DNA of 64,000 nucleotides from Octopus sinensis. Lineage: Eukaryota. The position numbers and the translations under genes were made by a program. The DNA is taken from NCBI RefSeq assembly GCF_006345805.1, contig NW_021832227.1, positions 1 to 64,000 on the forward strand, in the 5' to 3' direction. This document shows positions 1,011 through 61,859 of this stretch, piece by piece. The first letter of the stretch is position 1. Every line of letters starts with the position of its first letter. The notes below the pieces were generated by a model. That model was given only the letters and a program-made list of their open reading frames with translations, had not been told where the DNA came from and ran no database searches.

Positions 1011-1011
1011 C

Positions 1012-4140: not shown

Positions 4141-4179
4141 TGATCAAAGAATTGTGCATTCATTTAAATCGTTGCATAA

Positions 4180-4791: not shown

Positions 4792-4844
4792 TTTATTTCT
4801 TCCTTAGGTTATCAGCAAATTACTTTTTTTAAAAGCAAGTCATT

Positions 4845-5684: not shown

Positions 5685-7771
5685 TTAAAGTTTTGATTGA
5701 TATTTGTATGCGGAAAATCTCAAAACAGCCAGATAAAAACCTTGAAACGAGTTTAAGAAAACAAAAATAAATTGCAGAAATACTGAATGATTATACTTTA
5801 TGAAAAAACCAAGAACCCAGGTTATGCCTAAAAAATTGGAAATAATGTACCAAAAAGGAATATTAATCCAAATAGCAAAAAGAATTCTTTAAATTTTGAC
5901 GGCATGTTTTTTGAAAATAATTTTTTTCGTCTTCTATTTTTATCGAGAGAAATAAGGATGAGTATGAAAATAATGATATTAATTGCTAAACAAATAGCAA
6001 TAGGGAAGTATAAGCCTAAATATAATGAAAGTCCATTCAGCCAGCATCTAAAAATGATGTTAAACAAAAACATTTGTTTCTGCATATACATTTTCCAATT
6101 AATAGCTGATATGATGGTCGGAGGAATAATGGGAACGCCTAGTTGATTATATCATTCGAAACTGACCCCAAGCAGTAAAAAATGCAATTTTTAAAAAATC
6201 GACAGAAATACTTCCAAAAACTTTAACAAATAAATAGTAGAAAAATATTCCTTCTGCTGTCATCCAGGAAAACACAGACAACAATGAATAATGCAATAGG
6301 AATCCGACTGCCCCACAGCTTTTATTTTTCCCGAACTCAGTCCCAAAACCAAAAACAAGGTTCATCAAAAGCATTGCAATACATAAATTCAAAAATAAAT
6401 TAAATGAATAAGATTTATGCCCATTTCTAATATTTAAAGTAACTATCTAACCTCCAAGACATAATCGAGTAAACAATGACGACAATCTCTGTTATTATTG
6501 ATACTGCAAGACCAACATGTGTAAAAATGCTCAGCCATTTATATTTTCCTACTAAAGATGGATCCTATATGTAATAATTATTTTACAAAAAATACAAAAA
6601 TGACAGCAAAATTAGTCAAATGAGAACAAGTACAGCGCATCCCATTCTCAATAATCTTACTGCTGCATCCATTTGATCTCCAATCTTGTGTGGACACATT
6701 CAGATATACACAAATTGATTGTTTAGTGAAATCTTATTTATTTTAATCACAACACACTTCCTGGAAACTCAAGTTGTATTGTCAAGTTGTGAATCGGCTT
6801 GTTAGTATTCACCAAGATTCCCACAACTGATGTTTGAAGCTTTGATTTATTAAAAATATTAAAAAGTTCATCGTTTTTCCAGAAAACAAACGCTATTTTT
6901 AGTTTCGCAGATTCTTACAGGTAAGCTATTTTATTTTACCTTCTAATAAATCTTGAAGATGATTTTTGTCAAGTTTTATTTTAATTGGCGATTCTTTATG
7001 ATCAAGAATAGTCAGATTTGTGTTTGTTTTGTTCAAAGTCAATAACTTTGCATCAAAATTTTGTAAGCTGAATTTAGTTGTTCCGGGTTTGCCATCAGTA
7101 GAAATTATTGTTTTTGTTATGGTTTTCACAATTCTAATTAAATTAAAAATGATATGACTTTATGTTTGTCGATTTCACCTTCTCATCAGAAACTGTGGAT
7201 TTGGAATAAGACAATTGATTACTAATTGTACCAAGAATTGCCTAAATGCAATAATCATGTGTTGTTGTAATTGTTTTCTACTGTAAACAAAAAATACCTG
7301 ACTTTCTTTTTCAGTCAAGTTATTTTTCCATTTGCATAATTCAAAAACTGGTTTACGTTGTTCACTTCCTATCAATTATTTCCTAAACCTAGTCACCTCA
7401 TCTGTGTTTTCGACTTGGATTATTTTGAAGTTTGCCATTATAGTCGTAATTGCATGTTACAGTTCTTGAATCTTTTACAGAAAATACTTTATTATTACCA
7501 GTTCCCTTTTTGCATTCTTTAATGGCACCTTTTGTAAGAATTTATGTTAGGACAATAATCGTGGATTTTTGCAGTTTGAGGTTTTAGATTACTCGTTGTC
7601 ACGGGAAAAATAACCAAAATATCTATCCTGACAGTTCATAAAAGTTGCCTGCAGATATCCATCGTCTTGAAAGCAAAAGTTATATTTTATAAAATCTAAA
7701 TTGAATTATCATTCTACTTCCCGTCCAAGATATAAATATATTTCCGATAAGCATAATATGCGTCGTTAATA
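5685..7771 (-). pseudogene. Adhesion GPCR, 5'-truncated and frameshifted copy
   Basis: GPS motif WRSNGC...CTCSHLTNFAVIF and 7tm_2 helices. It lacks the first exons and has several 1-bp deletions relative to the 53.2-55.6 kb copy. Confidence 0.8.
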
Positions 7772-12271: not shown

Positions 12272-12692
12272 ATGTCTGACTCGTTCCCTGTTGACGTTGT
12301 TTTTAAATAAATCTAATTATATTTAGTTATCCGATGTATATATAGTAGTCCGTCGACAAAAAACCTCAATATACATTGATGTCCCTGAATATGCAATAGT
12401 AAAGCATCTAAAGACCATATTGGAACAAATATGTCAGAGATCTGTGACTGACATTCGTCTACTCCACGACTGTGTGGTATTTTGTTGTAGAAAACATACA
12501 AATCAGATTATGGAGGATAGATTTAAGCTATCTGATTATGGACTGTCATCGAAGACTGCCCAAGCTCACAAACCAATCACTCTGACTATGTGTTTTAAAC
12601 AGGAAGGTTGATTAGTCGGGTTATTGTAAGGTGGAATGTTCGAAGACGCCGTGATTGAGGAATATTCTAAATTGTCTAATAATAATGAGTAA
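12272..12692 (+). CDS. ELOB: Elongin B; exons 12272-12295, 12327-12476, 12507-12606, 12631-12692 (about 111 aa)
   Basis: Spliced product DVYIVVRRQKTSIYIDV...LSDYGLSSKTAQAHKPITLTMCF...FEDAVIEEYS aligns with Elongin B (MDVFLMIRRHKTTIF...). Introns are 31, 30 and 24 nt; the first exon boundary is less certain. Confidence 0.88.
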
Positions 12693-19330: not shown

Positions 19331-19700
19331 GGGAATATGCTAATAATTATTAACTATTTATATTTTAAACATTATTTTTAAGACATGTGGTTAGATATTT
19401 GGCGTGAAATTAATACGTTTTTGGTTAATTAATAAATTTTTGTAAAATATAACAATTGTTTAAATATGATTTTAATATTTTATCTAGTGATAAATCTTGG
19501 ATTTTATTGATATTTTTATATTTTATTTTGAAATTTGAAATATTGATTTTTAAATATATTACTACACTCTATTTAAAAATCCAAGACAGCTTATAATTAC
19601 AGAATATTTCAAAAAATATTCCAAGTAAAATTAATCCTTGTTATTATTTAATTATCTTAAATTAAAATCAAATAAAAATAATAATAAATAAAGTTTGTTA

Positions 19701-20852
19701 ATGGGGAATACTGTTTATAAACGAAACAACGATGAGGTGGTGGATGACTTATGCCTTCAAACGGAATTTTCCTACGAGATTGAAATGGCACTAAGGATAG
19801 TCGACAGAGGATTTTTTGCTCAACTAACCGAACCCAAGTTGATATATTCCTTCAATCCTCTGACAAACGGACTCGTCCACATCTCTAGTCCCACCATTTA
19901 TGCCATTGCCCTAAAACACCTCGATATCAGACCCGGGAACAGTTTTCTCAACATTGGCTCAGGTTCGGGGTATTTTTCTACCATTGTCGGCTTTTTGCTC
20001 GGTATGCCTCCTCAGTAGTATAAAACGAGGTACATTTGGGACAAATCACGGAATCGAACAGAATCTTGACATGGTGGAATATTCGAGGGGCCGAGTCCAC
20101 GAATTCAAACTCAAAAATCCATTTTTTGATATGTTTGATTTCTGTGAGCCCAAATTCTACTGGGGAAATGCATTTTCCATAAATTTTGATAATTTTCCGC
20201 CAATTTTATATGACCGGATATACGTCGGGGCTAACGTTCCTTCACAATTCCGTGATTTTTTCATTTCGTTGTTAAACATTAACGGACTATTGATCCAGCC
20301 CTATTCAGGAAATGTACACATTCTTAAAAATATCAAAAAAATAGTTTATTTTGATAAAAAGACTCGATTATGACAGATTTGAATATTCCAATGTCCTCGA
20401 AGTCACTTTTACAGAAATGGTCAGACCCTCTGACGTCACAAACGTGGTACTTCCAGGTAAAACTGATTTTTAAAGTCCCAGAGCGTAATGTGCCTTCTTT
20501 GATGGAGATTTGCCGAGATGCGATTCGCGGAGATCTCCGGGAAAAAATCACGTGTCACCTCGGTCACCAGTATGTCCCACTCCGTCGGCTTTATTTTGAG
20601 TCTACAAGAGGTAGTAGAGCCTCAAAAATGACAGAAGAAGATATAAGAACGAGTGTTGATGTTTTCGGGTTTTTGGGGGATGAACGACGGTTTGTGGTGC
20701 TGCCGGATTCCCCTGAAGAACCGAGTTGTGCGGAGTTTGAATATAAGGGGGACGATGAGCCGTATGTTGACTTGATGAGTCGGTTTGTGTCTGCCTTGCC
20801 TGTGCATTATGCGCTAAAACAATTTCTAATGTACTCTCGATTATTGTTTTAG
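19701..20852 (+). CDS. PCMTD1: PCMTD1/2-like protein; exons 19701-20001, 20030-20313, 20345-20456, 20476-20852 (357 aa)
   Basis: MG start, SFLNIGSGSGY, NHGIE, YDRIYVGA, BC box PSLMEICRDAIR and C-terminal LPVHYALKQFLMY. Introns of 28, 31 and 19 nt give one continuous frame. Confidence 0.92.
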
Positions 20853-24561: not shown

Positions 24562-25485
24562 ATGATCTCTAATCATGATGAAAAACTAAAAACTGAATAC
24601 ATCGTGGCTAACAGATACAGACTAATCCAAAAAGTAGGCAGTGGATCTTTCGGAAAAATATATTCCGCCTATGACATTACCACCGGAGAAAAAGTAGCCA
24701 TAAAAATGGAGAAATCTCAATCCAAACATCTCCAGTTGTGTTTTGAGAGCAAAGTATACCGAATCCTCCAGTCCTACGCAGGAATTCCTGCCATGAAGGA
24801 CTATATCGAGGAGAATGACTACAATAGTCTTGTTATTGAGCTCCTGGGTCCCTCACTGGAAAAACTATTCGACAAATGCAAACGAAAATTCAACCTCAAG
24901 ACTGTCCTTATGCTGGCTTTGCAAATCATAGACAGACTGGAACTTCTCCATTCACGTTGTTTTATCCACAGAGATGTGAAACCTGACAATTTTCTGATCG
25001 GGACCGGTCGGTTGTGTCACAGATTGTACCTCATTGACTTTGGATTGGCTAAAAAATACAAAAGTTCGACGACAGGAGTCCATATTCCTTACAGAGATGA
25101 TAAAAGTCTGACGGGAACTGCGAGATATGCCAGTTCTAATACTCATATGGGTATTGAGCAGAGCAGAAGGGATGATATGGAGTCCCTGGGATACATGTTG
25201 CTATATTTCCTGAGAGGGAACCTTCCATGGCAGGGTTTACAGGCTTCAAATAAGAAGGAAAAGTACAGGAAAATTGGGGAAATGAAGGTTTCTACGAGCA
25301 TTGAGAGTCTTTGTCGTGGATTTCCTAACGAGTTTGTGTTGTATTTCAAGTATTGTCGGAGTTTGGATTTTGAGAAGAAACCTGATTATAATTATCTTCG
25401 AAAAATTTTTAAATTGCTGTTTAAAAAGATGGGGTACGTTGATGACGATTTGTATCTGTGGTTTTTTGTTCCTGATGAAGAATGA
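24562..25485 (+). CDS. CSNK1A1: Casein kinase I (alpha-like), intronless
   Basis: [49 protein letters not shown] and LPWQGL motifs. The isoform assignment is tentative. Confidence 0.93.
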
Positions 25486-32350: not shown

Positions 32351-33600
32351 ACAGTAAACATCGGTTAATTGCATAAATCGGTTAATGGCATAAATTCATG
32401 TTTAAAACCATAACTTATATGGTTTCCAATGAAAAAATATCGGCTAATTGCATATCGGTTATTTGCATAAATCGGTTAATGGCATAAATTCATGTTTAAA
32501 ACCATAACTTATATGGTTTTCATTGAAAAAATATCGGCTAATTGCATATCGGTTAATTGCATAAATCGGTTAATTGCATACTTTCATTGGGAACATTTGC
32601 TATTTTTTCTTATAAAAATTTTTGCATAATTGCATAATTATAATTTGTAATTTTAGAATTTAATTATTATTACACATGTTATCTTCGTTACGTCGTGATC
32701 TTACACTTTCTCAAAAATTGGAAATAATCAATTTGTTTATTCAAGGAGGTCAAACTCAATCAGCTCTATCTGCAAGATTCAACTGTTCTCAGTCTCAAGT
32801 CTCACGGATTTTGAAGAATAGAGAAGAAATTATGCTATTGGCTGAATCTAATTGAACCAATTTGAGTCGAAAAAGACGACGCAATGGGAAAGAAAAGAAC
32901 GTAGAAACTGCATTGTCCGTTTGGTTTGCTCAAACCAGGACCAAAAATGTACCAATAAATGGTAACATACTAACCCACAAAGCTACTAGCTTTGCCAAAA
33001 CAATGAAAATGGATGACCTTATTCCTACTTCAGGTTGGCTTCAGCGTTGGAAAGAAAGAAACAACATATCATTTAAACGCATTTATGGGGAGAAAAAAGA
33101 TTCCGATATAAATGCTGCTGAATACTGGTGCCAATGGACATTAAAAGATCTTTTAAAAGACTATACACGGGAAAACATTTATAATTGTGATGAAACAGGA
33201 CTCATATTCCGAAGTTTACCCGACCGGACATAATGAGGATGAAGAATGTATCGGAATCATGTCCGATGAAGAAATATGTTTAATGTCAAGAGATATTTCT
33301 TGTGAAGACGATGAGGACGATGAAGATCCCATACCCGTGAAAACAACCAGTTCGGAAGCTATGGGTGCATGCAGATTAATACGCCAGTTTCTTACTAACA
33401 GCGATTTAACAAGTGAAATGGATATGGACAACTTCTATGAACTAGAAAAAAGCGTCCTACGCCTTTGCCAGAAGACTAGACAGTCCAAAATTAATGATTT
33501 TTTTAAACGTTTTTGATTATTTTCTTTTCTTGACTATTAAAAAAATTATTGATTTTTATTAAAACATCGGTTAATTGCATAAGATTTTCCGTGGACAAAT
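32351..33600 (+). mobile_element. pogo/Tigger element (HTH_psq, CENP-B HTH, truncated DDE)
   Basis: TA-CAGTAAAC start and subterminal CGGTTAATTGCAT repeats. Motifs SVWFAQ...VPING, SGWLQRWKERNNI and IYNCDETGL. Confidence 0.82.
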
Positions 33601-34969: not shown

Positions 34970-37830
34970 GCCTTTTCAATTCCAAGCCTATTTCGTACAT
35001 TCGAATTTAGGAATCCAAAAGTCGAAAAAATTCGTTTTATTCCACCTGTTGAAGCGGCTGCTCCAAGAATTTTTTTTGAAGAGTGAAATTTTTTTATGAT
35101 TCCCAGGTCCATTGGCTGGACCAAGCCTGTACTATTTCGCGGTATAAACATGATTTCAATATTAGACAAATTTTCTGGTATGCGATTTATTTATTTATTA
35201 AATCACCAAGACCACGCTAAAAACCGAACAAATGTCACGTGATCCCGATACACTCAACCAGGGACCTCATCCTCGCTCGGTGGTCTTTCCACGAGCCCAC
35301 ACAAGATCGCACAGGGCGGCAGGCCGTTTTTGGCGGAGCAGTCGCTGACGGGCCCAGGTTCAGTTTGATGAGGTCTTCCAAAGAGGCTGGACCGGGGCGT
35401 TGGCTATCATGTGACCAACGATCGGTTAATCTGAGGGCCCTTTGTTGGGCCTCCTCGATTCGCCTCCTGTTGGACCACGATAGCCGCGGACCCCATGATC
35501 CGCAAGCGTACGCAACACAGGGTTCGAAGTACTGGCGGTAGATATTCGCCAGTACCGGGTGCGACCCGTTTTTCCAAATACCAGATAGAGTTCGCAGAAT
35601 GTTCAGTTTATGTTCGCATTTGCGAAGGAGGTTGTCCACATGAGGGGAGAAACAGAGGTGCATGTCGAGGGTTACCCCTAGGACCGTCTGACTCCTGCAG
35701 AAGGGAACGGAAGTATTGTTAAGCTTTAAGTCGACAGACGTCCTTCCCAATCTTTTATCCGAGGTGAAAAGTGACGTGGCGGACTTCGCCGCGTTTACCA
35801 CGAGCCGGTTTTCCGTCAGCTATAGGTTCAGCCGATCCAAGTTAGCTTGGAGCCTTTCAGAGGCCTTCTGGATGTCCCGGTCCCGTGAGGCTAGCACGAT
35901 GTCGTCCGCGTATGAGAGAACAATGTCATTGTTGTCGAGGGAGTGAGGGAGGTCTTCCAAAAATAGGTTGAAGAGAGCCGGGGATAAGGGGGATCCCTGA
36001 AGTACTCCGTTGGGTAGAAGACGAGATTTTGACTTCAGACCACCGAGGCACACCCTTCCCCTTCGTCCACTTAGGAAGTTGGTAATCCATATTTTTAGCT
36101 TCAGAGGAAAGTCGGATTGGAATATCTTCCTTGAGAGGAGCTTCCTCGAGACGAAATCGAAGGCTTTATGGATGTCGACGGAGCAGAGCACGGTCTTTTG
36201 GTGCCTCGGTTTGCTGGCAAAACCGGTACAGATGAAGTTTGACAAGGATTGGAGGTACGAAGACGTGGACTTCGCCTTCTTAAAACCATGTTGAAAATGT
36301 CTTTCGGGTAAGAAAGCTTCTATTCTGCCAAGAACCAGTCTTTCCAGGATTTTCGACATCGAGCATAACAGGGAAATCGGCCTGAAAGAAGCCGGGTCCC
36401 CTCTTGGTCTTCCAGGCTTCAGTATTGGCCTTATTAAGGCCTGTTTCCATAAAGCCGGAATTACGTTGTTGTTAATAGAATGGTTGAAGATTGCTGTTAG
36501 AAATCTGACACCTTCGGCACCAAGGTTTTTTAGTAGGATCACCGGGATTTTGTCCGGGCCGTGAGAGAAAGAAGGTTTTGTTGAGTGCAAGGTATCTTCC
36601 ACCTCCTTTACCGAGAGGAGAAGCGGTTCAGCCCGTTTTTTAGGCTTCTGTTGGAGGGGAGTGAGTCGGATTTCCTGTGATCTTTATGTGCATTTTTTGC
36701 ATAGAAATTCATGAGGTTGTTCACGTCTTTTTTATCAAAATCTTCGAAAGGTTCGGGAGCGTCCCCCCTGGCCACGTGCCGAATGGCTTTCCACACTTCA
36801 CTTGTTGAACGATTGCGGTTCACGGTAGAAAGAATTCGATTCCATTTCAAATAGGTGTGTTTGAGTTCATTGGACTTCAGTTCCTTGTTTAAGTGACGGA
36901 TGCGGGTAATTATGTCAGAAGACATCGGTTTGACCTTTTGAGGCGATTTCTCTCCTTGGCCAGACCGGATATCCTTCGACTACAAGCAGCGTGAGGAGGA
37001 CGTTTAGGAATAGCCTTTGCTCTTGCTTCCAGAATGATCTTCGAGAAGAAGCCAATGGCTTTGTCCAGAGAGCTAAAGTTGCAAAGATTGCAATTTTTTA
37101 GTCTCGTGTTCAATATCTCTTGGAACCGTGGCTAGTTGGCCGCTTTGTAATTGTAAGGAATTGGAACTTTCCTGGTGAAAACTTCTCTTTTGATCTTCAC
37201 CGTTATCGGGTTGTGATCGCTTCTCGTTTCATAGAAGACTGACCACTCCGTAGATGATGCCAGAGAAGGAGAGCATAATGTTACATCGGGTGACGTGGGT
37301 TTGTCGGACCCTCTGAATGGGGTTCTTGTGTTTCTCAAAGGGTCGTTCAGGATGGTTAAGGAATCCAATTGGGAAATTAGAGATTTCCCTCTCGTATCCG
37401 CCAACTGATTAGAGAGCCAAAGGGGATGTTTTGCGTTGAGGTCACCGCATAAGATGACCCCGTCTGTCCGTGCAAGATTGGAGAGAGTAGGGAGGCAATA
37501 GCTCCTTGGACAAAATCCGGGAGGTGGGATGTATATATTGACGAGTAATAAACGGCCCTTCGATGTGCCAAGCGAGATTCCGATTAACTCGGAAACTTCG
37601 TCAGCCCCGATGATGTTCCTCCCTGAGCGTTTCCAAATGCGTCTGAATTGCAAGATTCAAGCGAGTTGGTGAACCACATAACGCCACGCCAGTCTATTGA
37701 TAAAATTAGATGGGAAGGACAGTTATCCAGAATAAGCAAAATTTGTTTTCTTAGTCTGGACACATCGAAAGAGTGTTATATTAGTGAATTGGTAGATTTT
37801 CTCGAAAATATAAATAAAATTCATATTTAT
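34970..37830 (-). mobile_element. pogo transposase DDE remnant split by the LINE insertion (34970-35185 and 37709-37830)
   Basis: The flanks rejoin in frame as ILLILDNCPSH-RIPENLSNIEIMFIPRNSTGLVQPMDLGII. Confidence 0.72.
35186..37708 (-). mobile_element. 5'-truncated APE-type LINE (APE, RT and C-terminus; frameshifted) with (TAAA)n tail
   Basis: APE motifs VNIYIPP, CGDLNAKH, SPDVT and SDHNPI. RT motifs GPDKI, FRPISLL, QHGF, VDIHKAFD, GVLQGSPLSPALFN and YADD. Confidence 0.92.
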
Positions 37831-43118: not shown

Positions 43119-43442
43119 ATGATTCGAAATTTACTCCACTTTGGAGACCATCTCCGCCTGATTAAACAAAGAAAAAGAAATCTAAATTTTGATGTCAAGT
43201 ATTAAACAAACCCTATTTTATCTGATAGATGGTTTTACCGAAAACCAGTCGAAGCCAGTCCTTCCGAAGAACGCATAGCCAGCATAGTAATGACGAGTGT
43301 TTGGTGGTGGATTTTACACCAATTTTATTGGCATCCGGATGCTGTTTTTGTAGAATTGTTATTTTTTATATTTAAGGGTGAGTTTCCTTATCCTGACCCT
43401 TCTCAGTGGACGGACGAGGAATTGGGGATACCTCCTGAGTAG
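43119..43442 (+). CDS. NDUFB2: NADH dehydrogenase 1 beta subcomplex subunit 2; exons 43119-43198, 43229-43349, 43377-43442 (88 aa)
   Basis: [37 protein letters not shown] is the diagnostic C-terminus. Introns are 30 and 27 nt. Confidence 0.93.
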
Positions 43443-46949: not shown

Positions 46950-48200
46950 ATTTTCAATTTACTGGTCCTGGGCCTCCCTGAACAGGGCCATCACCTTTCG
47001 TGATCCTCTTGCTATTATTTTGCCTTTCCTCAGAGTATTCGTTTTCTGTCACCTTATCATGTCTCCTTTTCATTGAGTTAGCTCCACTTTGTTGAGTGTT
47101 TCACACTAAATAATCTTTGTTGAGAATCTATTCTTTAGTCATTACGTCTTCGAAATCATGTTTATATTCTACAAATATTCATAATACTTGAGGCGATCGC
47201 ATCCCAGGTAATAACAATCGGAAGTATTTTGGCTTTGTAAATTATTTCTAATTCACTTGCCAGAATATAAATTATCCATACACGTCGCTCCAATTTCCAT
47301 TAGCTATATCCGGTTTAATTCTTTGTTTTATATGAAAATGTCCGGCTTGTTATTTTGAATTTTAGATTTGGTAGGAATAGTAGTATCAAGGAATAGTCTT
47401 ATTTCAGCACGATCGATGGTAATTATGGTTTGAATAGAGTGATTTTTTGAATCCAAATTTTCTGCATAGGTGTATGCATTTAACAATTTTGTTTTGTCGC
47501 CTTGTATAATCAGATTTACGCATTCTATTGTATCGAGTTGTCAAATGGTAGAATGTCTTATTAGAAATTTTGCAATCAAGCTTGCAGAAGAGAATATTCT
47601 TGTTTTGCAGAAGGAAAAACATGGCTTCAGATTTAGGAGAAATATTTCTTTTTACAATTTATTTTGAAAATGTCTATATATCGAAAGTCTCATTTTCAAG
47701 TGATTCAAATAATTTTGAATGGACAGTTTTCTTTTTGATAGCTTATAAGAAAGAGACAAAAAAAAGAAAGACACTCAATTTGCAGACTCTTTAGTGTCTG
47801 GGTTGATTCATATTTTATTTGCAAGAATTCTGTGATTGTGGCCATATGTGACTTTCTTTGTTGTTCAGCCCACACAATTCCTGCACTCCTCAGAGAAGTA
47901 AATTTTCGCCTTTCCAGACTTTTTTGAAATCGAGCAAAATTTTCTCAGCTTTGAAGGTGATTGATATCCACCTCCTTCCAAACATATTCCTCGGTAAGTA
48001 AAGTCTTTTTTTGTAAGCTGGTTTCATATGCACATTCAAATTCATAAGTATCTTTTTAACTAATTTATCAATTTCTTCAAATTCACAGGGTTCCAAGTCA
48101 ATGAGACAAATATAGTAATTGCAATGATAAAGCATGTTCATTGATTGCTCTAAATAAATTGACTGAGTTTAATTTAGTTTCCGATAACTTTTCAATACGA
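46950..48200 (-). mobile_element. R4/Dong-like RLE retrotransposon 3' half
   Basis: RLYLPRNMFGR, HLTTRY...DYTRR...VKCIHLC (CCHC region), NNKPDIFI and PIVITWD. Confidence 0.72.
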
Positions 48201-48868
48201 TTTTGCATTTCTTCTTTAATATTTTTGAGTACGTCTTTTTTTGAGTACTTTAATACATCTTTTTTCTAGAACTCCAAAATATCTGTAGCTGTCTTGACTT
48301 TTTTTTGTATTAGTGAATATTTGAATATATTTAACGAATATTTAAATAACAAAAATTAAAATTATTGATAAAATTTTAAATAATTTTTCCTCGCTATTTG
48401 TGTGTGGTAAACTATGAGTGCAAGGGTGAACAATATGAAGAAAAAAAGAAAAACATCAAATTCGACTAAAACTAGAAGTTATTGATTTCAGAAAAATAAT
48501 CCTGATGTTACTCAGGAAAATTTAGCAGCGGTTTAATATGCCTATTGGAGTGATCAATTCAACGTTGACGAAAACATGACACGTGGCGTTATGTGGTTCA
48601 CCAACTCAATTCAGACGTATTTGGAAACGCTCAGGGGGTACCTAATGCCCACCGGAAAAGAACCATCAAAACTCGTCCCCCTGGTGACATTTTCGTTCCA
48701 GGACGATGCACTCTACCTATGTCTCACTCCTGCCGGAGGACATCCGCAGCCCGAAGACATAGAAAGCACGGTAATCTACAATTTTAGTCAATGTATAAAT
48801 CTCGACGTATAAACAATATATTTCATTATTTTTTCATTATTTATTAATTTTAATGGGATTGTCTAGAT

Positions 48869-50071
48869 CAGGCATTCTCAACCTTTTTTGTTCATCGCCC
48901 CCTTAGATATTTTATCGCCCCCTTTTGAATTTTATCGCCCCCTTGTCCACATACAATTTAAAAATTTTTGGGCATTGTCCCTTAATTGGTTGTTTTTTTT
49001 ATATAACTCAAAACCCATGGATAATCTTTTTAATAAGAGAAAAAAATCCCTTATATCTTCCAACCATTGACATAGCATCATCAGTCGCACAGGAATCCAA
49101 ATTTTCAAATAATATTCCATTTGTTTCAAAAAACCCTTTTACTACGGAATATATTGACATTCCAGTTGTACAGGTTTCCAATAATTCGACAAACAATAAA
49201 TCCTCATTTAATGCACATTCATTATCAAAATACCTAATTTTATTAAAACTTCCAAAATAACCTCACAAATCCCATTAAAACAGCTTTACTATCTACAATG
49301 ACGCTTTCATCAATTTGTAATGAGAACTTACTTCGCTTCAGTCTTTCAATAAGGATTTCCTTTACATTGTCACCCATTTCATCAATTCTTCGACGAATCG
49401 AATCATTGCTAAGAGGTAGACTTTTAATAATTTTAGAAGCATCTTGATGCATTACATCCGATATTATTACTTCCAGTGATGGAATTATTACATTTTCTGC
49501 GATAGTATGAGAACTGGAAGTTTTCGCAATAATTTCAGCAATTTTATAAGAAGCGATGTGCGCACCCACAACTGCATATAAATAAATGTTAAATAACCAT
49601 CATGTACTGGCTTTGTGAATAACTATTTGATCGTTTTCTTATTTTCAAAATTGTATTTTAAATTTTCAAAATATTCAATCGGCTTTGACATTTTATCCGG
49701 GTGCTTGCGTTTAGATGATCCTGTAATCGTTATGGCTTCATCGCCTCATTTGAAAAAGAACATTGACAAATAAGACAATAAGGCTGTTTTGTATCTTCAG
49801 TACTTTGAATAAACCCATATTTTAAATATTCGTTTTGATAATGACGACTTTTCTTATTTGAGCGAGAAGACATCTTAGATACCAAACAAGAATGTAAAAA
49901 AGCGTGCTATTTTAAATATAAGGATAAACACTATAGAAAAAATATTAATAAATCTGAAACATTATTAAAATTAACATGTATAAATACTTGTATTATATTT
50001 AAATTCGAATATTTTATTAAATATATTATCGCCCCCCTGTACAAAATTATCGCCCCCGTTGAGAACACCTG
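48869..50071 (-). mobile_element. hAT Buster element (duplicate of 1319-2522)
   Basis: Same TIRs and GTCTAGAT TSD. Confidence 0.9.
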
Positions 50072-50139
50072 GTCTAGATTTTCATATTTTTTAAAAATAC
50101 AAAATAAGCCGAAAATCGTATTTGTTAATTATTAGGAGC

Positions 50140-51130
50140 AGAAATTCTTGGAATATCTTCTCTTTATCAACTAATGAGGTCCGCCACATGAATTCGTCCA
50201 AATAAGATTGCCATTCATGTGTTGTCAATATTTTGAGTATGGATGGAGCGGTCCAAAGGGTCAACAAAATGCTCAGAATGATTTATCACAGAATGTGAAT
50301 AAATCCCTCCTCCAATCTGCCCATTATAGGCTGCCCAACCATCAGTAATGATAAGGGTGCCGGAAGTACGCATCGAATGATAACTTCATTAAGTGTTTCC
50401 ACTGTTCTGTCTAAAGGATAAATGGAAAAAAGAACCTGCAACTTCTTCAAAAAGCACTTTCTAGTTTCCCTGTCTATTCCACCCAATACTCAATGGCCTG
50501 GTCGCCAATGACCCCGATGATAGTACTTTCTGAGAAAAAATTACACTCGTCGATTTCCACTATCGACTCTTCTAAAAATTAAATGAATTACGTAATGTAT
50601 CTTTATTAACCACGAGTCCCCCAAGTTTAATAGGAGCATTTGCAAGAGACACCGTAATATGTTCTCTGCAGAAGTTCGTCCAATCTGTAATCGTATTTTG
50701 CGAAATTTCTAGTTCGTATGAGATGAGATTTCCCTGGTAATTTAATGCCCACATATACGTAAGCATCAAAATTTTCGCTAACGGTAAATGACTTCTTAAA
50801 ATTAGTTTGAGGATCACTTACTGCAAAACCAGCTGTTCGTTCTTATACTTCGAGAAGTATTGCATGGAATACATAACCAAATTGCGTTGTCCACGTTTCT
50901 TCTTGACTTAGATAAACGACAGCGTCTCTATTTGTGAGAATATAGGTCTTACTTTACAGCGAACGCATTTCATTGTGTTAGAGATCAACCGCCTCTTTGC
51001 GCACCAAATTACACACTCTTCTATATTATCGCCGAAGAGCCTGTTTAGAGACAATAACCGGTTATATTCCTGCATTATTTGCTCATCAGACTTGATTGCA
51101 GCCGCATCAACAATAGAAAATCCCATGTAA
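50140..51130 (-). mobile_element. Merlin transposase (duplicate of 2590-3600)
   Basis: Same motifs and introns, with different small indels. Confidence 0.85.
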
Positions 51131-52374
51131 AATTAAACAATCCCATTAAAATTAAATTAAAAAATAATGAAAAAATAATTTGAGTCTATTGTTTATACGT
51201 CAAGATTTATACATTGACTAAAATTGTAGATTACTACGATCAAAAAGACGTGAACAACCTCATCAAATTCTATGTAGAGACTGCACACAAGGAGCACAGG
51301 AAATCCAATTCACTCCCCTCTAACCGAAGCCTAAAGAAACGGGCGGAACCTCTCCTCCTCTCGGTAAAGGAAATGGAAGATACCTTGCACTTCAAAAAAT
51401 CATCGTATTCTCAAGGAGGCCCGAATCGAGGACGTCCAACAAAGGGCCCTCAGATTAACCGATCCGTTGGTCGCATGAGAGGGAACGCACCGGTCCAGCT
51501 TCTCTGGAAGAACTTATCAATTTAGCCAGGTTCCGCTGTGAGGACGACAGGCCGTCTCAAAGCAGGCCAAACGGTGTTGGTCGAGGGATTTACGGAACGA
51601 TTTGATGCGGGATTGAAGGTGGACTTCGTCCCAAACAATTTGCCTATACGGGTCTTCCGGGATTTCTACTTGATCAAAGAATTGTGCATTCATTTAAATC
51701 GTTGCATAAAAAAGGAATGACTACAAATTTGAGTATGGGAACAAATATGGAAACATTTTCATATACAGATGAACTTACCAAATTCAAATTAGTGAATGCT
51801 CTACCTTTAATTATTGAGGCTTGGAACCAAGTCAAGTGAAAACTATCAAAATTGCTTTAAGAAAGCATTAAACAATTGGACGAAGATAAATGAAAAAATA
51901 CTCGAAGAATCCACCGACGAAAAAAGTATTAAATTTGAATCACCTTACAATTAAAGATAATAAAAGTGAAATTATGATTGAGTTTCCTATCTGTGCACTT
52001 CTCGTCTGCGAAGAAAACGCATATCTTAATACAATAACAATGTGAAGAATATGAGCATGAAGAAATAGATAGAAGAAATGATAATCCCATTGGTTATGCA
52101 AATGCACTTAAATATTTGGAAAATATTGAAAAATATTTTTTGCAAGAATCTGGTGAACATATTCATATGATTACAAATTTGAGAAATACATTGACGAAAA
52201 TTTAAAAAAGGAATATAAAATTACCAATTACATGACACATTTTAATTAAAAAATTATTTTTGTTAAATTAAATTAACGAATGCTCAAATTTCGTTTTCGT
52301 TATATGAATAGTCTACTGTATTTATTTCTTCCTTAGGTTATCAGCAAATTACTTTTTTCAAAAGCAAGTCATCT

Positions 52375-52550
52375 TTAATATCTAAAAAGTTATGTGCCAG
52401 CGGCAAGGACGCAGTGTACGTTGCCGCGAACGATTGCCAGATTGATGCGCTGGCGGAACCAGAGGCCCTCTCTCGGGTCCTTAAGCCTCCTCCCAATGGA
52501 CTGCCCGACCTCGTTAAGGAACGAGTCGGTCTCTTTCCCTGCGGCTTTTT
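52375..52550 (-). mobile_element. CRE 3' end (duplicate of 4845-5020)
   Basis: DPREGLWFRQRINLAIVRGNVHCVLAA. Confidence 0.75.
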
Positions 52551-53213
52551 TGTTTTTAATTTTGAACACATTGTGTATAATTATGAATACACAATTCTCA
52601 GTAATGGAGGTGGAAAGTGTGTATGAGCGGGGCTTGTTTCCCCTACAAACACAAAAATGTGGTTTGACTAATCCGGATAAGGCGGGACGTGAAGAATACA
52701 CATTTCTGGAACATAGAAAAGGGAATAGATTTGTAATTTTAATAATAGACAGGTTCTTTCTCTCCTCTAGCACTTTAGATTACCGAGAAGTTGCAGTTAA
52801 TCGCCTCTCACTAACTAAATGCCATGAAAAGGCTGGATTGGCGAGCATCAAATAAGATACTCTTCAAAGTCCTCTTAAGATTTGTTAACTGTATAGACTT
52901 ATCTACATTCAACCGGAGCACAGAAAAGTTCAAGTCTCTAACTTATATCATTATTTAAAGTTTTTATCGTCCTATTAAAAATATTTTTTGATTGGCTTTA
53001 GGTTTATTTTAAACAAGACCGACATTAAAAGTAGAGTAAATGATCATTTGAGAAAGAATTGAGAAAAATAATATACAAATTAAAATATCTACTTCACTTT
53101 CAATCAAATTTACAAAAAAACTTGATTGCAAGTTTATAACTATTTGATAGAATAAGCCTCATTAACTAATAGGTTTTATTCGAAAAATATTTTAAATTTA
53201 TTAAATGACATAA

Positions 53214-55594
53214 TTAAAGTTTTGATTGATATTTGTATGCGGAAAATCTCAAAACAGCCAGATAAAAACCTTGAAACGAGTTTAAGAAAACAAAAATAAA
53301 TTGCAGAAATACTGAATGATTATACTTTATGAAAAAACCAAGAACCCAGGTTATGCCTAAAAAATTGGAAATAATGTACCAAAAAGGAATATTAATCCAA
53401 ATAGCAAAAAGAATTCTTTGAATTTTGACGGCATGTTTTTTGAAAATAATTTTTTTCGTCTTCTATTTTTATCGAGAGAAATAAGGATGAGTATGAAAAT
53501 AATGATATTAATTGCTAAACAAATAGCAATAGGGAAGTATAAGCCTAAATATAATGAAAGTCCATTCAGCCAGCATCTAAAAATGATGTTAAACAAAAAC
53601 ATTTGTTTCTGCATATACATTTTCCAATTAATAGCTGATATGATGGTCGGAGGAATAATGGGAACGCCTAGTTGATTATATCATTCGAAACTGACCCCAA
53701 GCAGTAAAAAATGCAATTTTTAAAAAATCGACAGAAATACTTCCAAAAACTTTAACAAATAAATAGTAGAAAAATATTCCTTCTGCTGTCATCCAGGAAA
53801 ACACAGACAACAATGAATAATGCAATAGGAATCCGACTGCCCCACAGCTTTTATTTTTCCCGAACTCAGTCCCAAAACCAAAAACAAGGTTCATCAAAAG
53901 CATTGCAATACATAAATTCAAAAATAAATTAAATGAATAAGATTTATGCCCATTTCTAATATTTAAAGTAACTATCTAACCTCCAAGACATAATCGAGTA
54001 AACAATGACGACAATCTCTGTTATTATTGATACTGCAAGACCAACATGTGTAAAAATGCTCAGCCATTTATATTTTCCTACTAAAGATGGATCCTATATG
54101 TAATAATTATTTTACAAAAAATACAAAAATGACAGCAAAATTAGTCAAATGAGAACAAGTACAGCGCATCCCATTCTCAATAATCTTACTGCTGCATCCA
54201 TTTGATCTCCAATCTTGTGTGGACACATTCAGATATACACAAATTGATTGTTTAGTGAAATCTTATTTATTTTAATCACAACACACTTCCTGGAAACTCA
54301 AGTTGTATTGTCAAGTTGTGAATCGGCTTGTTAGTATTCACCAAGATTCCCACAACTGATGTTTGAAGCTTTGATTTATTAAAAATATTAAAAAGTTCAT
54401 CGTTTTTCCAGAAAACAAACGCTATTTTTAGTTTCGCAGATTCTTACAGGTAAGCTATTTTATTTTACCTTCTAATAAATCTTGAAGATGATTTTTGTCA
54501 AGTTTTATTTTAATTGGCGATTCTTTATGATCAAGAATAGTCAGATTTGTGTTTGTTTTGTTCAAAGTCAATAACTTTGCATCAAAATTTTGTAAGCTGA
54601 ATTTAGTTGTTCCGGGTTTGCCATCAGTAGAAATTATTGTTTTTGTTATGGTTTTCACAATTCTAATTAAATTAAAAATGATATGACTTTATGTTTGTCG
54701 ATTTCACCTTCTCATCAGAAACTGTGGATTTGGAATAAGACAATTGATTACTAATTGTACCAAGAATTGCCTAAATGCAATAATCATGTGGTTGTAATTG
54801 TTTTCTACTGTAAACAAAAAATACCTGACTTTCTTTTTCAGTCAAGTTATTTTTTCCATTTGCATAATTCAAAAACTGGTTTACGTTGTTCACTTCCTAT
54901 CAATTATTTCCTTAAACCTAGTCACCTCATCTGTGTTTTCGACTTGGATTATTTGAAGTTTGCCATTATAGTCGTAATTGCATGTTACAGTTCTGGACTC
55001 TTTTACAGACAATACTTTTATTATTACCAGTTCCCTTTTTGCATTCTTTAATGGCACCTTTTGTAATGGAATTTATGTTAGGACAATAATCGTGGATTTT
55101 TTTGCAGTTTGAGGTTTTAGATTGCTCGTTGTCACGTGGAATTAAATAACCAAAATATCTATCCTGACAGTTCATAAAAGTTGCCTGCAGATATCCATCG
55201 TCTTGAAAGCAAATAGTTATATTTTTATAAAATCTAAAATTGAATTATCAATTCTACTTCCCGTCCAAAGTATAAATATCTTTCCGATAAGCATAATATG
55301 CGTCGTTAATATCTGAAATCCACTCAAAGTAATTAATAAATGATATTGCTCCCATCCATCCTCTAGCTAACAAAATGTGAATGTAATTAACAAAACATCC
55401 AGTTGTATATTTATATATTTCTTCAAGTTCATTAAATTTTGTTATCGGTTTGTAATCTGTGCTCCATAAACTTATGTATTCAGTCCACGTGACATTTTCA
55501 ATCTTTACGTAGTTATATGAAATAACTATAATAAACAATTCACAAAATTACTCCGATTTTCATTAATAAACAAAAGAAAGATAAAATTAAACAT
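53214..55594 (-). CDS. Adhesion GPCR (signal peptide, Cys-rich ectodomain, GAIN/GPS, 7tm_2), multi-exon
   Basis: Candidate start MFNFIFLLF at 55594. GPS CTCSHLTNFAV, TM2 MNLCIAML, TM3 LHYSLLSVFSWMTAEG and TM6-7 FG-ITWVLGF...FLNSFQG. Examples of micro-introns: 55526-55551 and 53357-53379. Confidence 0.85.
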
Positions 55595-56060: not shown

Positions 56061-57326
56061 CAGCATTTCTCAACCTTTTTTTAATGAGGATCCCCAAAGT
56101 GCTTTAAAAAATTTCTGGTACCCCCTAGTATTATTTTATTTTAATCAAGAATTAAATCAAATTTTATTAATAAAAATTTATAATGTAATTAAAAAAAAAT
56201 TAAACTGCCTAATGGGACTTTTGTTCTTGCATTTTAGAGATTAAAATATCAGTTTTCAGCTTTGTCTCAGATAGGGCAATACGCAAATTAATCTTCTACT
56301 TTAAGACAATTTCGATATTTTGACTTTAAATATGCAAGATGTGACATTGCCGTTTCACACTTGTGAAATGGAATGAACTTCTCTAATGCTATTGAACTGA
56401 GTAATGGATATACAGTTCTTAGTTCACACTAGAATTCCATTAATGTACTTTTTAAACGATATCATAGAACTTTGAAACTTTTTAATTCAATAAGAGATTC
56501 TTGAATTTTGAGATCGTCATCTAAATTCTTAGAAGAAAGGAAGGAATTTATAATCCAAACAGGAACAGAATTTTGTGCAAGAAAATAATTTTTAAAGGAA
56601 ACATTGATATATTTAATTTTAAAAGTTTATTTTTTCACAAATATAATTTATTTTTGAATGCAATGATTATTTCATTCAATTCAATTGAAGACATATATTT
56701 TCATAAAAATTCATAAATACAGTTAACCTTGCAGAGATAAATAAAAATCATTCAAAATAGAAAAAATGGCAGCAAAATAAAAGAATTTTTTGAATTCAAT
56801 GGATTCCATCAATTCAAATAAATCAAAACGATTATTATTTTTCAAAAACATTGAAGTAGAATTAGACAATTGGGCAACTCTTGTCAAAGCCTTTCCCAGG
56901 AAAGCCATCTGACTCAGAATGATACAACAAAATTAAATGTTCTGATAAAAGTTCTTGTGACAGCTTCTAAAAAATTAATTATTTTTATTATTTGATCGAG
57001 GACAATCTTCATCTCTGATGGCAAAGTTTTTGATGCAAAATTTGTATATTGCACAATGGAAAGATTGGATATTTTGATTCTTTTTTTACATTTGCAATAA
57101 ATCCTGACCAATAACGAATCATTGAAAGAGCTCCGTCAGTGCAAATTGATCCGACTTTATTCCAATCAATAGAATTAAGTTCCATAAATTTGTCAACAAC
57201 AGCAAAAATATCACGACCTCGTGTTCTTTCATCAAATTCGATACAAGAAAGAAAATCCTCAAAGATCTTGGTTGCCAAAAATATATTGCAAATATAAAAT
57301 TCTGGGGACCCTGTCAAAAAACGCTG
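56061..57326 (-). mobile_element. Degenerate hAT (Buster/ZBED5-like)
   Basis: TIR CAGCATTTCTCAAC and a decayed GTCAAAAAACGCTG, TSD ATTTATAT/ATCTATAT, motifs EDFLSC...TRGRDIF...ICTDGA. Confidence 0.75.
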
Positions 57327-57462
57327 ATCTATATATCTACATTGGTCAGGAGAGCAAAAGTTATAATAATCTCTTGAGCCCTAAAGCTTTCTAAGATTAA
57401 CTTTTTCATTATCTTAACTGGTGGAAAATTTAAGAAAACAAATTAAGTTAGGAATGTACAAA

Positions 57463-58409: not shown

Positions 58410-61400
58410 ATGGAAAAAATCGAAAACCCTCTCGTTACCTGTGTAGTCTGTAATAGAAAGGTATTCTCAACTAAATTCCTTCACTAGAACATCAAATGTA
58501 AATTCAGTCTCATTTACAGCGGTTCTGTAAGGCAGATTTGCAGCCGACTGTGCCTAAAGTCTTTCAGAGAATCTCCCGACATGTTTTTAAACTCCGAAAA
58601 GCCCGATGTATTTTTACAATGTGAACTATGCGGACAAAACTTTTACCAAAGCGAGTCTGTAGAGTGGCAAAACCTCAATTTCTGTCGAGATGAGTGTGCT
58701 GAGGGATACAAGCAGAATTGTACGACTTCGTTTTGTTTCTTCTGCGGACAAAGCACACAAATAACCGAAAATTTGTTGATTTTATCCTTCCGAGCCGGGG
58801 AAATGAACTCTGATCGAATTTTTTGCAGATTTTGTTCTCAGGATTGCCTAAACTCATTTTCAAGCCAACAAATTGCCTGTCGAAATTGCTCAAACAATCT
58901 TCCTGCTGATCGGAACAACATTTTTGCTGATATTTTGGACGAAAGTGAATCTCTAAGTTATTTTTGCTCTTTTTTGTGTCTGGAAAACACGAGATCTTCT
59001 CTGGGACCTCACCGTAAGTTGGAAAGGTCCTTGGATGTGGTTGTGAAGAGGAAAGCCCTCTGTTCGATTTGTGGAAAGTACAATTTTCCCCACCACGAAG
59101 TGAACGTGCAAGAAAAAGTATTTTGTCAGTTTTTTGATGATTAGATGCACTCTTTGTGTTCTGATGAATGTTTTGAGGAGTTTAGGGATAGGAATGTGAG
59201 TGCCAGTGTCCACATGTGTGACCAATGTTCTACTCTGTGTGATACAAGTGGTGATTCTAGTGCCTTGACTGCCCATTTTGGCAACAGGGATCACTTTTTT
59301 TGTGACGAACAATGTTTAATTTTGTTCAAAGCGTCAAATCGTGCATTCTCATATTGTTATCGGTATTTTGATTGTATCAAATTCAGTTGTTCATCAAAGC
59401 GGGGGAAATATGGGATTCTTTATTTGAATTTGGGGGATTCGAAAATTAAGTTGTTTTGCACAGCCACCTGTCTTATTCAACATTTTTATGAAGAGGTCAA
59501 AAACTCGACTGAGCCCCTAAAAATTGGCTGTGGTTTTTGCCAGAAGAATCTGAGTGACCCAATGTACTGCCAGACTAACTCGATCGGGACTGTCCAGCTG
59601 TTTTGTTCGGAGAATTGTTTCCAGCAATGTGAGGGAGACAATCACTGCAAGAAATACACAGTCGACAAATCAGGAAATGTCCCCAAATGCAGTTTTATAT
59701 TCATTTAATTTAAAATAGTCAACGTTCATTGGGAGAATGAGGAATATGTGACACATCATACTCAGAAACGACCCCAAAATATCTCCACGACTGATTTGGA
59801 TGGTTTATTCTTAAATAATAATCTCCAGAATCCTCAACCTCAACAATGTTGTCAGAAAATGAGTCATGTTCTTCAGAAGTGAGTGATTTGTGTGACTGGT
59901 TAGAATCATATTGAGCCAGTCAAACGTAAATATGCGAGTGTGGCTCACACAGGAATGGTTTGTCGACCAAATGTGGTAGACAGTGCTATCACAGTCACCC
60001 CAATGACTCATGACGTTGAATGTCAGACTGGTTGTGCTATAAAATGACCCAAAGATGAGGTTGTGGATTCTCAAATGAGGCGAGTGACCCCTGTGCCTTT
60101 GCCTTATTTATGTCCTTTGCCTATGGCCGCATATAAACATCCAATTTCGGTTCCTCATCTCCTTCCAGTGCCAATCCCTGCTCCAATTCCTATCAAATTG
60201 TCGAGTGCAGAGGCCGTGGCTAATTTCAATGCCTCGATTCAAGTTGGTTGATGTCCCCAAGTTGTAGAAGTCTATCGAAAGGGTACCTCAAGATGCCTAC
60301 GAAAATGCCATAGTGAAAATGTCAATGCTACTATCAGATTCCAATCGTAGGCTAATATTAAGTAATAGTTCAGCTACGAGGGAGAGGAAGGTGAAAGATG
60401 AGGCGAGGATGAGTTATCGGAATATTCCTGAGAGGTCATTTGAGAGGAGTCGACAGTGCGAGGTTGTGGAGGAAAAGAAGTCGTTGGATGAGAATTGGTC
60501 ATTTAAATTCATGTACGGAGTAAAGGCGTGGGATCAGTGGATAGCCACATGTTCATTGGATGATATGTTTGTCTTTAGTATCAGCTGTAGAGGAATCGAG
60601 GTAGACAGAAGGGGAGATTTGACAAATTACTCAACCAAACAAGTGGCCGCATTGTTGGCTGAGTTTGTTTATAAAGTACGTAAAGTAAACGGTGAACAAT
60701 ATGCCCCTGACAGTCTCTACTATCTATGTCTTGGTTGTATGTTGAGTGGTCATGTCTGAAGGGATCCAAGCTTACTTGCACGTGATGAAACGAACCGAAG
60801 ACGTGTTTTCAGGATTTGGAGAGTTCAGCAAGTTTTCTGACAGATTGGACTCCATTTTGTCCAGTTGGCAACCACGTGCTAATGAGAATGGTTAGTTATT
60901 GTGTTTAGTGGTAGGTTTGTTGTTATGTCGTGTTGAGGAAGAGCATTTGTGGGAGTGTAGGCAGTTGGGTTCCTGTTCTGCCTATGTGTTGTTAAATACT
61001 CTTGTTTATTTCAACGCCAAGTACTTCCTGCTCAAGACCCCCCAAGAGCACTACAATTTGTCCTCTGCCAGCATAGTCAAACAATCCCGTCGTTCTGTCT
61101 ACCGGGCTAACCCCGAGGGCAGGACAATGTTTCTAAAGTACTACGGCGGGAATATCTCAGACAAAGCATATGAACAGCCCGAGAATAGTTCTAACTATTT
61201 TAGATGTCCTGTTCGTCTGTACGAGTTTTATATGATGAAATGGTGGGTGGATGTGTTTAGACTCTAGTCCTGAGTCGATGAGGTCGAGAAATGATGTTTT
61301 TTATCTGCGTCCTGAGAGCTGTGTGTTGCCGGACAGTCCCTATTGGTTTACAACTGATCCTTTGCCTATTGAGGAGATTCGGAAAATGCTCAATCGCATA

Positions 61401-61448
61401 TTTATTGTGAAGGAAATACAGGAGGCTTATATTACAAACGATAAATAG
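58410..61448 (+). CDS. ZMYM4: MYM-type zinc finger protein with DUF3504 C-terminus (ZMYM2/3/4, WOC-like), 11 exons
   Basis: Repeated CxxC...FCSxxC fingers, a Pro-rich VPxPxP block, YAPDSLYYLCLGIQ, VEEEHLWECRQLG, LLNTLVYFN and RCPVRLYEFY. Ten GT-AG introns of 24-28 nt restore the frame. Orthology within the family is unresolved. Confidence 0.9.
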
Positions 61449-61859
61449 AGGGCTGGGATTTATTCATTGTGGCTTAATAAAGTTTCAGACTATTTTACAC
61501 GTCCTTTTTAGATTTGCTTTATTATGTCAAATTTGTAATTTAGTTTTTTAAATAAGAAACATTACTAAGATTGTAATATGTTGTCTTAAATGATGAAACA
61601 ACAGTGTTAAAGCATCACAAATGTGTCATATATTTCTGCAAGCTAATGCTTTTCTAAAACAAATCAAGGCTGCAATTTTCTGGGCTATGCGAAATAGTAA
61701 TTTATTATGACTTTTAAATTCGGTAATTTTTATGGCACTTGAATGATAAGTTATCATTGATAACGCTTTTATGTTAACGATATTCTAATTCACATTATTT
61801 TTTTATCAGCAAAATTGTTCAAGGCTATAAATTTGAAACAAAACAAACTACTGCCCAAG

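Follow-up and report, generated by a model that had tools for sequence, protein, structure and literature searches.

The locus described here raises two linked questions: whether an animal gene can truly be interrupted ten times by introns of only 24-28 nucleotides (nt) and, if so, which animal the gene belongs to. The gene is a member of the ZMYM/WOC family and lies within bases 1-64000 of contig VCDQ01001820.1 (456,459 bp) of assembly GCA_006345805.1, which is filed under Octopus sinensis; this 64-kb stretch is called the window below. Our comparisons confirm the ten segments as genuine spliceosomal introns, which would presumably be removed from the mRNA, and the window DNA is very probably of dicyemid origin, a circumstantial inference.

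When the ten GT..AG segments are cut from positions 58410-61448 of the forward strand, a single open reading frame (ORF) of 2781 nt is obtained, which runs from ATG to TAG and encodes 926 amino acids; in the unspliced sequence all three frames are repeatedly interrupted by stops. The spliced product gives strong Pfam matches to DUF3504 (PF12012, 1.1e-47, residues 761-912) and to the QRICH1 domain (PF25561, 2.6e-25, residues 638-750). Seven MYM-type zinc fingers were located by a regular expression (C-x2-C ... C-x2/3-C-x3/4-F/Y) in residues 11-389. Only one of the seven attains the Pfam zf-FCS threshold, and this match is marginal (22.6 vs a cut-off of 22.4 bits, residues 205-240); it crosses junction 2. 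In fingers 1 and 5 (the numbers are those of the fingers, not of introns 1 and 5) an intron separates the CxxC half from the FCSxxC half.

The order of these domains is that of the ZMYM2/3/4-WOC architecture, and the occurrence of MYM fingers, QRICH1 domain and DUF3504 in one spliced product bears out the ZMYM/WOC identity that an earlier note, made from the DNA letters, had proposed. The product shares with ZMYM2/3/4, QRICH1 and Drosophila WOC the succession of N-terminal MYM fingers, a proline-rich linker and, at the C-terminus, the QRICH1 domain and DUF3504; there are also two shared intron positions. The finger array ahead of the C-terminal module, which is present here, is a feature of ZMYM and WOC but not of QRICH1. 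As compared to vertebrate ZMYM proteins, the window product is shorter, its fingers are divergent and every intron of its gene is miniaturised. Kojima and Jurka are said to have traced the C-terminal module of ZMYM2/3/4, QRICH1 and WOC to a Crypton in 2011.

In homology searches human QRICH1 (PDB 9hjt) matched the product with E = 7e-56, and the C-terminal module was 36-45% identical to its arthropod and fish homologues. A search with the full-length product returned two fish proteins only (1192 and 1462 amino acids). An exact look-up of the exon ORFs and of the spliced protein in a collection of 15 billion proteins gave no match, therefore the locus is without a public protein model.

The coordinates and lengths that the earlier note had given for the ten introns all check, i.e. 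each segment begins with GT and ends with AG, and their removal leaves the 926-residue frame (Table 1). The boundaries were examined by enumerating every frame-compatible GT-AG pair at each junction, and the alternatives obtained in this way are included in the table. Whichever boundary is chosen, a very short intron is needed at all ten sites.

The most telling evidence for the introns comes from the conserved C-terminal module. The alignment to human QRICH1 crosses junctions 8, 9 and 10; it is gapless at 8 and 10, and at junction 9 there is one single-residue gap, located three residues downstream. We also rebuilt the exact exon models of two insect orthologues, those of the beetle Asbolus (P0136) and the ant Vollenhovia (P0137), from their genomic loci and compared intron positions for introns 8-10. 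The equivalents of intron 8 are found at YYLCL|G in phase 1 and are 543 nt long in Asbolus and 326 nt in Vollenhovia. The equivalent of intron 10 occurs in Vollenhovia at LYEFYLSK|C, in phase 2, and measures 104 nt. Neither insect model has an intron at the position of intron 9. Since positions and phases are shared with the insects, introns 8 and 10 are old spliceosomal introns that have shrunk, and neither read errors nor chance GT..AG pairs. Five of the ten have a length divisible by three; they cause no frameshift and carry in-frame stops, a combination that indel errors do not explain.

An intron-aware ORF search gave a model of 920 amino acids (score 194) on the forward strand and one of 228 amino acids (score 26) on the opposite strand. 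The program uses a flat length prior, some of its boundaries differ from ours, and it produces spurious models antisense to a long interspersed nuclear element (LINE), so it serves as a strand control only. In a model-free test, GT..AG segments of 20-32 nt that join long open frames were compared with segments bounded by other dinucleotide pairs; a 2.6-3-fold excess was seen only at 18, 21, 24 and 27 nt, the signal being swamped by the overlapping frames of the GC-rich LINE region.

The pattern is not restricted to the ZMYM gene. With the support of homology we collected 23 introns in five window genes, i.e. the ten described above and 13, resolved by hand, in a PCMTD-like gene, NDUFB2, an Elongin B-like gene and an adhesion G-protein-coupled receptor (GPCR) gene. 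Their lengths are 19-31 nt (median 26, mean 26.3, standard deviation 2.8), 19 of the 23 being shorter than 30 nt, which agrees with the range of 18-31 nt that had been claimed for the window. GT...AG boundaries are present in 10/10 ZMYM introns and in 23/23 window introns. The claim that most introns begin with GTT holds for the ZMYM gene (6/10) but not for the window as a whole, where GTA (10) is as frequent as GTT (9). Retention of 22 of the 23 introns would lead to a premature stop, in 19 cases one that lies within the intron itself, therefore the unspliced mRNAs would be non-productive. The spliced products again give continuous domain matches. The PCMT match (residues 23-218) crosses two junctions, the NADH_B2 match of the NDUFB2 product (2.8e-22) crosses both junctions, and the adhesion-GPCR product has continuous GPS and 7tm_2 matches. 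For the Elongin B-like product Pfam gives only a weak ubiquitin-like match, and its identity is taken mainly from a comparison with human ELOB.

Two stop-free segments deserve separate mention. The NDUFB2 intron at 43350-43376, in phase 0, is the lone one of the 23 that would give an in-frame insertion (9 residues) if retained; the spacing of human NDUFB2 favours its removal. In the Elongin B-like gene, positions 12471-12500 of the forward strand hold either a candidate 30-nt GT-AG segment or a 10-residue loop insertion, which stays outside the census. Its removal would restore the spacing of human ELOB; as this spacing is its one support, it is left uncounted.

For the splice signals the 23 curated introns were pooled with 34 introns predicted in a second contig filed as O. 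sinensis (VCDQ01004456.1, see below), giving n=57. The last exon position (-1) is G in 33/57. Intron position +3 is A in 22 cases, T in 17, G in 13 and C in 5; position +5 is G in only 8/57, hence there is no GTAAGT consensus. At the 3' end, position -3 is a pyrimidine in 45/57 and position -8 is A in 27/57 as against a background of 26%. The pyrimidine content is 0.59 ahead of the AG vs 0.51 behind the GT. The A located about 8 nt before the 3' end is, as far as base frequencies can tell, likely to be the branch point. In the published logos of Dicyema japonicum the signals are 'GTa', 'AG' and weak upstream A residues which are thought to mark the branch point (PMC13644364).

The most economical mechanism is presumably conventional U2-type splicing by intron definition, acting on introns near the steric minimum. 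The ten introns are spliceosomal introns of the ordinary major type (GT-AG). Two at least are ancient and positionally conserved, all were compressed to about 24-28 nt as introns are across dicyemid genomes, and they may be recognised through minimal signals: a G|GT donor, a weak YAG acceptor and the putative branch-point A. The earlier note had inferred length-defined splicing with a remodelled spliceosome. Length, instead of the conventional 5' splice site, branch point and 3' splice site, would then be the main cue for recognising an intron, and the spliceosome would be substantially altered. This mechanism can be reconciled with a dicyemid origin and strikes us as rather unlikely. It would fit the narrow spread of lengths among the curated introns, the lack of a donor consensus and the slight pyrimidine enrichment, and the distance between the conserved A residues and the AG is greater in longer introns (PMC13644364), a hint that it is the distance from the 5' end that is measured. 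On the other hand, the invariant GT-AG, the G at -1, the pyrimidine at -3 and the A at -8 are conventional elements, and in the other animal lineage with ultrashort introns, the myxozoans surveyed, U2 snRNA (small nuclear RNA) and U2AF are conserved, from which conventional U2-dependent splicing was argued (PMC13644364). The window neither supports nor contradicts a remodelled spliceosome: Rfam and tRNA scans of it revealed no rRNA, tRNA or snRNA, and it contains no spliceosome gene, i.e. nothing that bears on remodelling.

As to the owner of the gene, a useful marker is an intronless casein kinase I (CK1) gene in the window, whose exact match in a single record identified VCDQ01001820.1 as the source. 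O. sinensis and O. vulgaris have one and the same genuine octopus CK1 (XP_029632993.1), to which that of O. bimaculoides is more than 90% identical; its gene is located on chromosomes, of 174 Mb in O. sinensis and of 182 Mb in O. vulgaris. Identity between this protein and the window CK1 amounts to only 59%, as against 63% between the window CK1 and plant CK1s. No partner at 90% identity or above was found anywhere, including O. vulgaris, O. bimaculoides and Argonauta. The closest relatives (70, 66 and 62%) are three proteins named 'casein kinase I-like [Octopus sinensis]' that are unique to that assembly (XP_029654342.1, XP_036354894.1 and XP_036354776.1) and are encoded on contigs of 0.96, 1.03 and 0.67 Mb. 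Like these three paralogues, the window CK1 is listed in NCBI and UniRef as an octopus protein. In the foreign genome the CK1 family appears to have undergone a small expansion, to four paralogues with 62-70% identity. An octopus retrogene family was considered as a source of these paralogues and rejected, as they are absent from the sister species and their contigs carry genes with ultrashort introns. CK1 is intronless both in the foreign genome (in at least two paralogues) and in the genuine octopus copy (positions 10001-10972 of the chromosomal locus L006).

We analysed the 21 kb around one of the CK1 relatives (VCDQ01004456.1, 620326-641267; here termed L002). Three genes of this segment are restored by predicted introns of 20-41 nt (n=34), and their products give full-length Pfam domain matches (Table 1). 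Tetranucleotide usage is similar among the thirds of the window and L002 (r = 0.72-0.90), and dissimilar to that of octopus chromosome loci (r = 0.24-0.52; 0.24-0.49 for the 21-kb O. sinensis locus L006). L006 itself is 96-98% identical to its O. vulgaris counterpart. Because of the CK1 divergence, the short-intron genes of L002 and the contrast in tetranucleotide usage, the O. sinensis assembly appears to hold the genome of a second animal, which is very divergent and has ultrashort introns. The window contig is probably unplaced, since it has an accession of its own, whereas the true CK1 locus is under a chromosome record.

A dicyemid is the most likely candidate for this second genome. Dicyemids live in the renal organs of octopuses at very high density and with a prevalence of up to 100%, and O. 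sinensis is the host from which D. japonicum was collected. Introns of about 25 nt in animals are a striking phenomenon that is already known, and the present locus is one more clean example of them: short dicyemid introns were reported in 2010 (Ogino et al., as cited in PMC6543705), described genome-wide in 2019 (Lu et al., PMC6736024; Zverkov et al., PMC6543705) and re-analysed in 2026 (Hadjez et al., PMC13644364). An earlier survey of 40 genes had already shown the shortening of dicyemid introns. In Dicyema sp. the median intron measures 27 bp and two thirds of the introns are below 30 bp, and dicyemids are described as having a conservative exon/intron structure; the D. japonicum genome has a GC content of 36.7%, 48.9% repeats, many copies of LINE ORF2 and 6.2 introns per gene.

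The window resembles the Dicyemida in several respects. The introns of both are of the GT-AG kind, the mode being about 25-27 nt in dicyemids and the median 26 nt here; both have multi-intron genes in which intron positions are conserved with other animals (introns 8 and 10 of the ZMYM gene). In both, the splice signals are reduced to GT(a), AG and weak A residues upstream of the latter, and the genome is small, AT-rich and repeat-rich, with O. sinensis as the host. The gene content of the window is bilaterian (ZMYM, adhesion GPCR, PCMTD, NDUFB2) and is accompanied by a LINE, by pogo fragments and by transposable-element-like remnants, the LINE being in line with the abundance of LINE ORF2 reported for D. 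japonicum. In other words, the host, the length of the introns and their weak signals, the load of repeats and the degree of divergence all fit the published dicyemid genomes, and the pointer to dicyemids in the earlier note is well supported. The contig is most likely parasite DNA that was sequenced along with the octopus host. We picture the ZMYM/WOC gene as a normal and probably functional gene of a dicyemid mesozoan, i.e. a tiny parasite of the octopus renal sac, whose DNA would have been sequenced with that of the octopus and have entered the deposited O. sinensis assembly as an apparently unplaced contig. The species could be D. japonicum or a different one, as no identical protein is found outside the octopus record.

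Several observations weigh against this account. Protein searches with the full ZMYM product, its C-terminal module and CK1 brought up no close dicyemid homologue, and the exact window CK1 protein is found only under an octopus record. The window is filed as octopus, and its GC content (about 33%, or 32-33%, with a local range of 28-44%) is slightly under the value published for D. japonicum; otherwise no tested feature differs from the Dicyemida. The compositional contrast with the host draws on a single 21-kb octopus locus. Finally, the logic of the reading frame allows more than one boundary for each of introns 5, 6, 7 and 9.

The DNA might also stem from another eukaryote with short introns in the sample, for instance a chromidinid ciliate of the renal sac, a myxozoan resembling the myxobolids or a parasite not yet described; we consider this improbable. 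Ciliates and nucleomorphs do have introns of this order, about 25 nt in Paramecium and 18-21 nt in the Bigelowiella nucleomorph. Stentor introns are even shorter, 15-16 nt (PMC13644364). These tiny introns resemble those of the window in their narrow length spread near the physical minimum, in their GT-AG ends and in that most of them give stops if retained, and chromidinid ciliates do occur in the renal organs of cephalopods. But the window genes are animal-specific and use the standard code: at the points where homologues terminate, TAG, TAA and TGA each serve as stop codons, and this speaks against a reassigned ciliate code. We regard a ciliate origin as ruled out by these standard stop codons and the animal-specific genes. 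In contrast to the ciliate and nucleomorph introns, multiples of three are not depleted here (length classes of 15, 22 and 20 among the 57 introns).

The myxobolids (Henneguya salminicola, Thelohanellus kitauei and Myxobolus spp.) come closer, with median introns of 22-27 bp, similarly reduced sequence logos and the compact genome of a parasitic animal (PMC13644364). However, they are cnidarians of fish and annelids, and myxozoan genomes are described as containing relatively few transposable elements, whereas the window is rich in them and comes from an octopus sample. Henneguya is moreover without a mitochondrial genome and aerobic respiration, and NDUFB2 is present in the window. Animal-type genes, i.e. 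a gene with MYM fingers, QRICH1 domain and DUF3504, an adhesion GPCR with GPS, PCMTD and NDUFB2, speak against an origin from other short-intron eukaryotes in general.

That the contig is genuine octopus nuclear DNA, and that the octopus has genes with introns of 24-28 nt, seems highly improbable to us. The record was deposited as Octopus sinensis and its CK1 is an octopus protein in RefSeq. Against these labels stand a CK1 that is far removed from the real one, itself invariant between O. sinensis and O. vulgaris; the lack of any protein at 90% identity or above in O. vulgaris, O. bimaculoides and Argonauta despite the near-identity of the real locus between species; the deviating tetranucleotide usage; and the separate accession of the contig, which is probably unplaced. 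Furthermore, in a survey of 51 genomes introns this short occurred only in myxobolids and D. japonicum (PMC13644364). It is hardly credible, finally, that the frame breaks are long-read sequencing errors or pseudogene decay with coincidental GT..AG segments: although the assembly is PacBio-based, contaminant coverage may be low and alternative GT-AG pairs are present at most junctions, the segments are insertions of 24-28 nt rather than indels of 1-2 nt, five of them carry stops without shifting the frame, QRICH1 aligns over junctions 8-10 with one single-residue gap after 9, two positions and phases coincide with insect introns, and the pattern recurs in the 13 introns of four more window genes and in the 34 predicted introns of another contig.

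If the dicyemid origin is accepted, the octopus reference and the protein databases very likely carry parasite genes under the name of the host. Such mislabelled genes can distort analyses of cephalopod gene families, of horizontal transfer and of intron evolution. A broader proposition is that GCA_006345805.1, together with the RefSeq and UniRef proteins derived from it, hides a multi-megabase long-read assembly of a dicyemid, perhaps of a species other than the one already sequenced; we consider the arguments for and against it evenly balanced. The O. sinensis-filed contigs in question are 0.46-1.03 Mb long, which is longer than the contig N50 of 196 kb in the published D. japonicum draft, and a literature search found no report of dicyemid contamination in the O. 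sinensis assembly. If the proposition is true, a second dicyemid genome is ready at hand for the study of minimal introns, and the mislabelled 'octopus' proteins need to be flagged. The long contigs could be a better substrate than the existing draft for studying how a spliceosome deals with introns that are almost devoid of signals.

Table 1. Features of the window and of the comparison segment L002 (positions in L002 refer to that segment)
Sequence	Feature	Position	Strand	Remarks
Window	ZMYM/WOC-type gene	58410..61448	+	11 exons, 10 introns; ATG 58410, TAG 61446-61448; from splicing and translation
Window	ZMYM exons 1-3 (approximate span)	58440..59600	+	seven MYM fingers by regular expression; zf-FCS match
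Window	ZMYM exons 8-11	60268..61445	+	QRICH1 domain and DUF3504; C-terminal module kept in ZMYM2/3/4, QRICH1 and WOC
Window	ZMYM intron 1	58461..58487	+	27 nt, phase 0, GTA..TAG, in-frame stop inside; alternative donors remove a zinc-finger cysteine
Window	ZMYM intron 2	59118..59144	+	27 nt, phase 0, in-frame stop inside; junction crossed by zf-FCS Pfam match
Window	ZMYM intron 3	59692..59718	+	27 nt, phase 1, 89% A+T, in-frame stop inside
Window	ZMYM intron 4	59803..59828	+	26 nt, phase 1; sole alternative 53 nt
Window	ZMYM intron 5	59879..59903	+	25 nt, phase 0; unconserved linker; 28, 37 and 40 nt also possible
Window	ZMYM intron 6	60031..60054	+	24 nt, phase 1, stop inside; 21 nt also possible
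Window	ZMYM intron 7	60243..60267	+	25 nt, phase 0; 28 nt also possible
Window	ZMYM intron 8	60734..60761	+	28 nt, phase 1, at YYLCL|G; gapless QRICH1 alignment; beetle and ant introns at equal codon and phase
Window	ZMYM intron 9	60891..60914	+	24 nt (or 18), phase 1, stop inside; without counterpart in the two insect models
Window	ZMYM intron 10	61243..61267	+	25 nt, phase 2, at YEFYMMK|C; gapless QRICH1 alignment; ant intron at equal codon and phase
Window	AATAAA, likely polyadenylation signal	61476..61481	+	begins 28 nt past the stop codon
Window	Adhesion-GPCR gene (GPS motif and 7tm_2), 3' part	5688..7159	-	six introns: 26, 25, 31, 25, 28, 23 nt
Window	Elongin B-like gene	12272..12691	+	introns 12296-12326 (31 nt; donor also allows 28 or 37 nt) and 12607-12630 (24 nt)
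Window	PCMT-domain (PCMTD-like) gene	19701..20852	+	introns 20002-20029 (28 nt), 20314-20344 (31 nt) and 20457-20475 (19 nt)
Window	CK1	24562..25485	+	intronless, 307 amino acids
Window	NDUFB2	43119..43441	+	introns 43199-43228 (30 nt) and 43350-43376 (27 nt)
Window	pogo/Tigger-type transposase fragments	22783-23085, 32664-33513	+	DDE_1, HTH_Tnp_Tc5
Window	LINE-type retrotransposon	35238-37656	-	Exo_endo_phos_2 and RVT_1 ORFs spread over several frames; 44% GC island
L002	Ski2-like helicase	146-3559	+	15 predicted introns; Pfam
L002	TFIIS	6759-7441	-	1 predicted intron; Pfam
L002	CK1 paralogue	10001-10942		intronless
L002	SBF/MTMR-like DENN-myotubularin gene	15900-20798	+	18 predicted introns; Pfam

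Apart from these features the window contains a direct duplication, 66-7771 and 47616-55311, of 7.7 kb with 97.7% identity, whose copies lie about 47.5 kb apart. It comprises the adhesion-GPCR gene, the second copy of which is found at about 53217-54688 with the same identity, as well as remnants of transposons. Either a segmental duplication of recent date or an artefact of the assembly could account for it. Three long ORFs on the reverse strand (14672-16153, 1697-2050 and 57012-57380) have a transposase-like look and no Pfam match. A unit of about 110 nt is repeated in tandem at 17298-17639, where peptide motifs (…FYRFLLRKMNT.FDYIANRR…) recur in the open frames of either strand. At 18399-19023 on the forward strand a series of open frames without a Pfam match includes the peptide MGISVSKPRK, a possible N-myristoylation start; it may represent a lineage-specific gene that has short introns and has escaped annotation.

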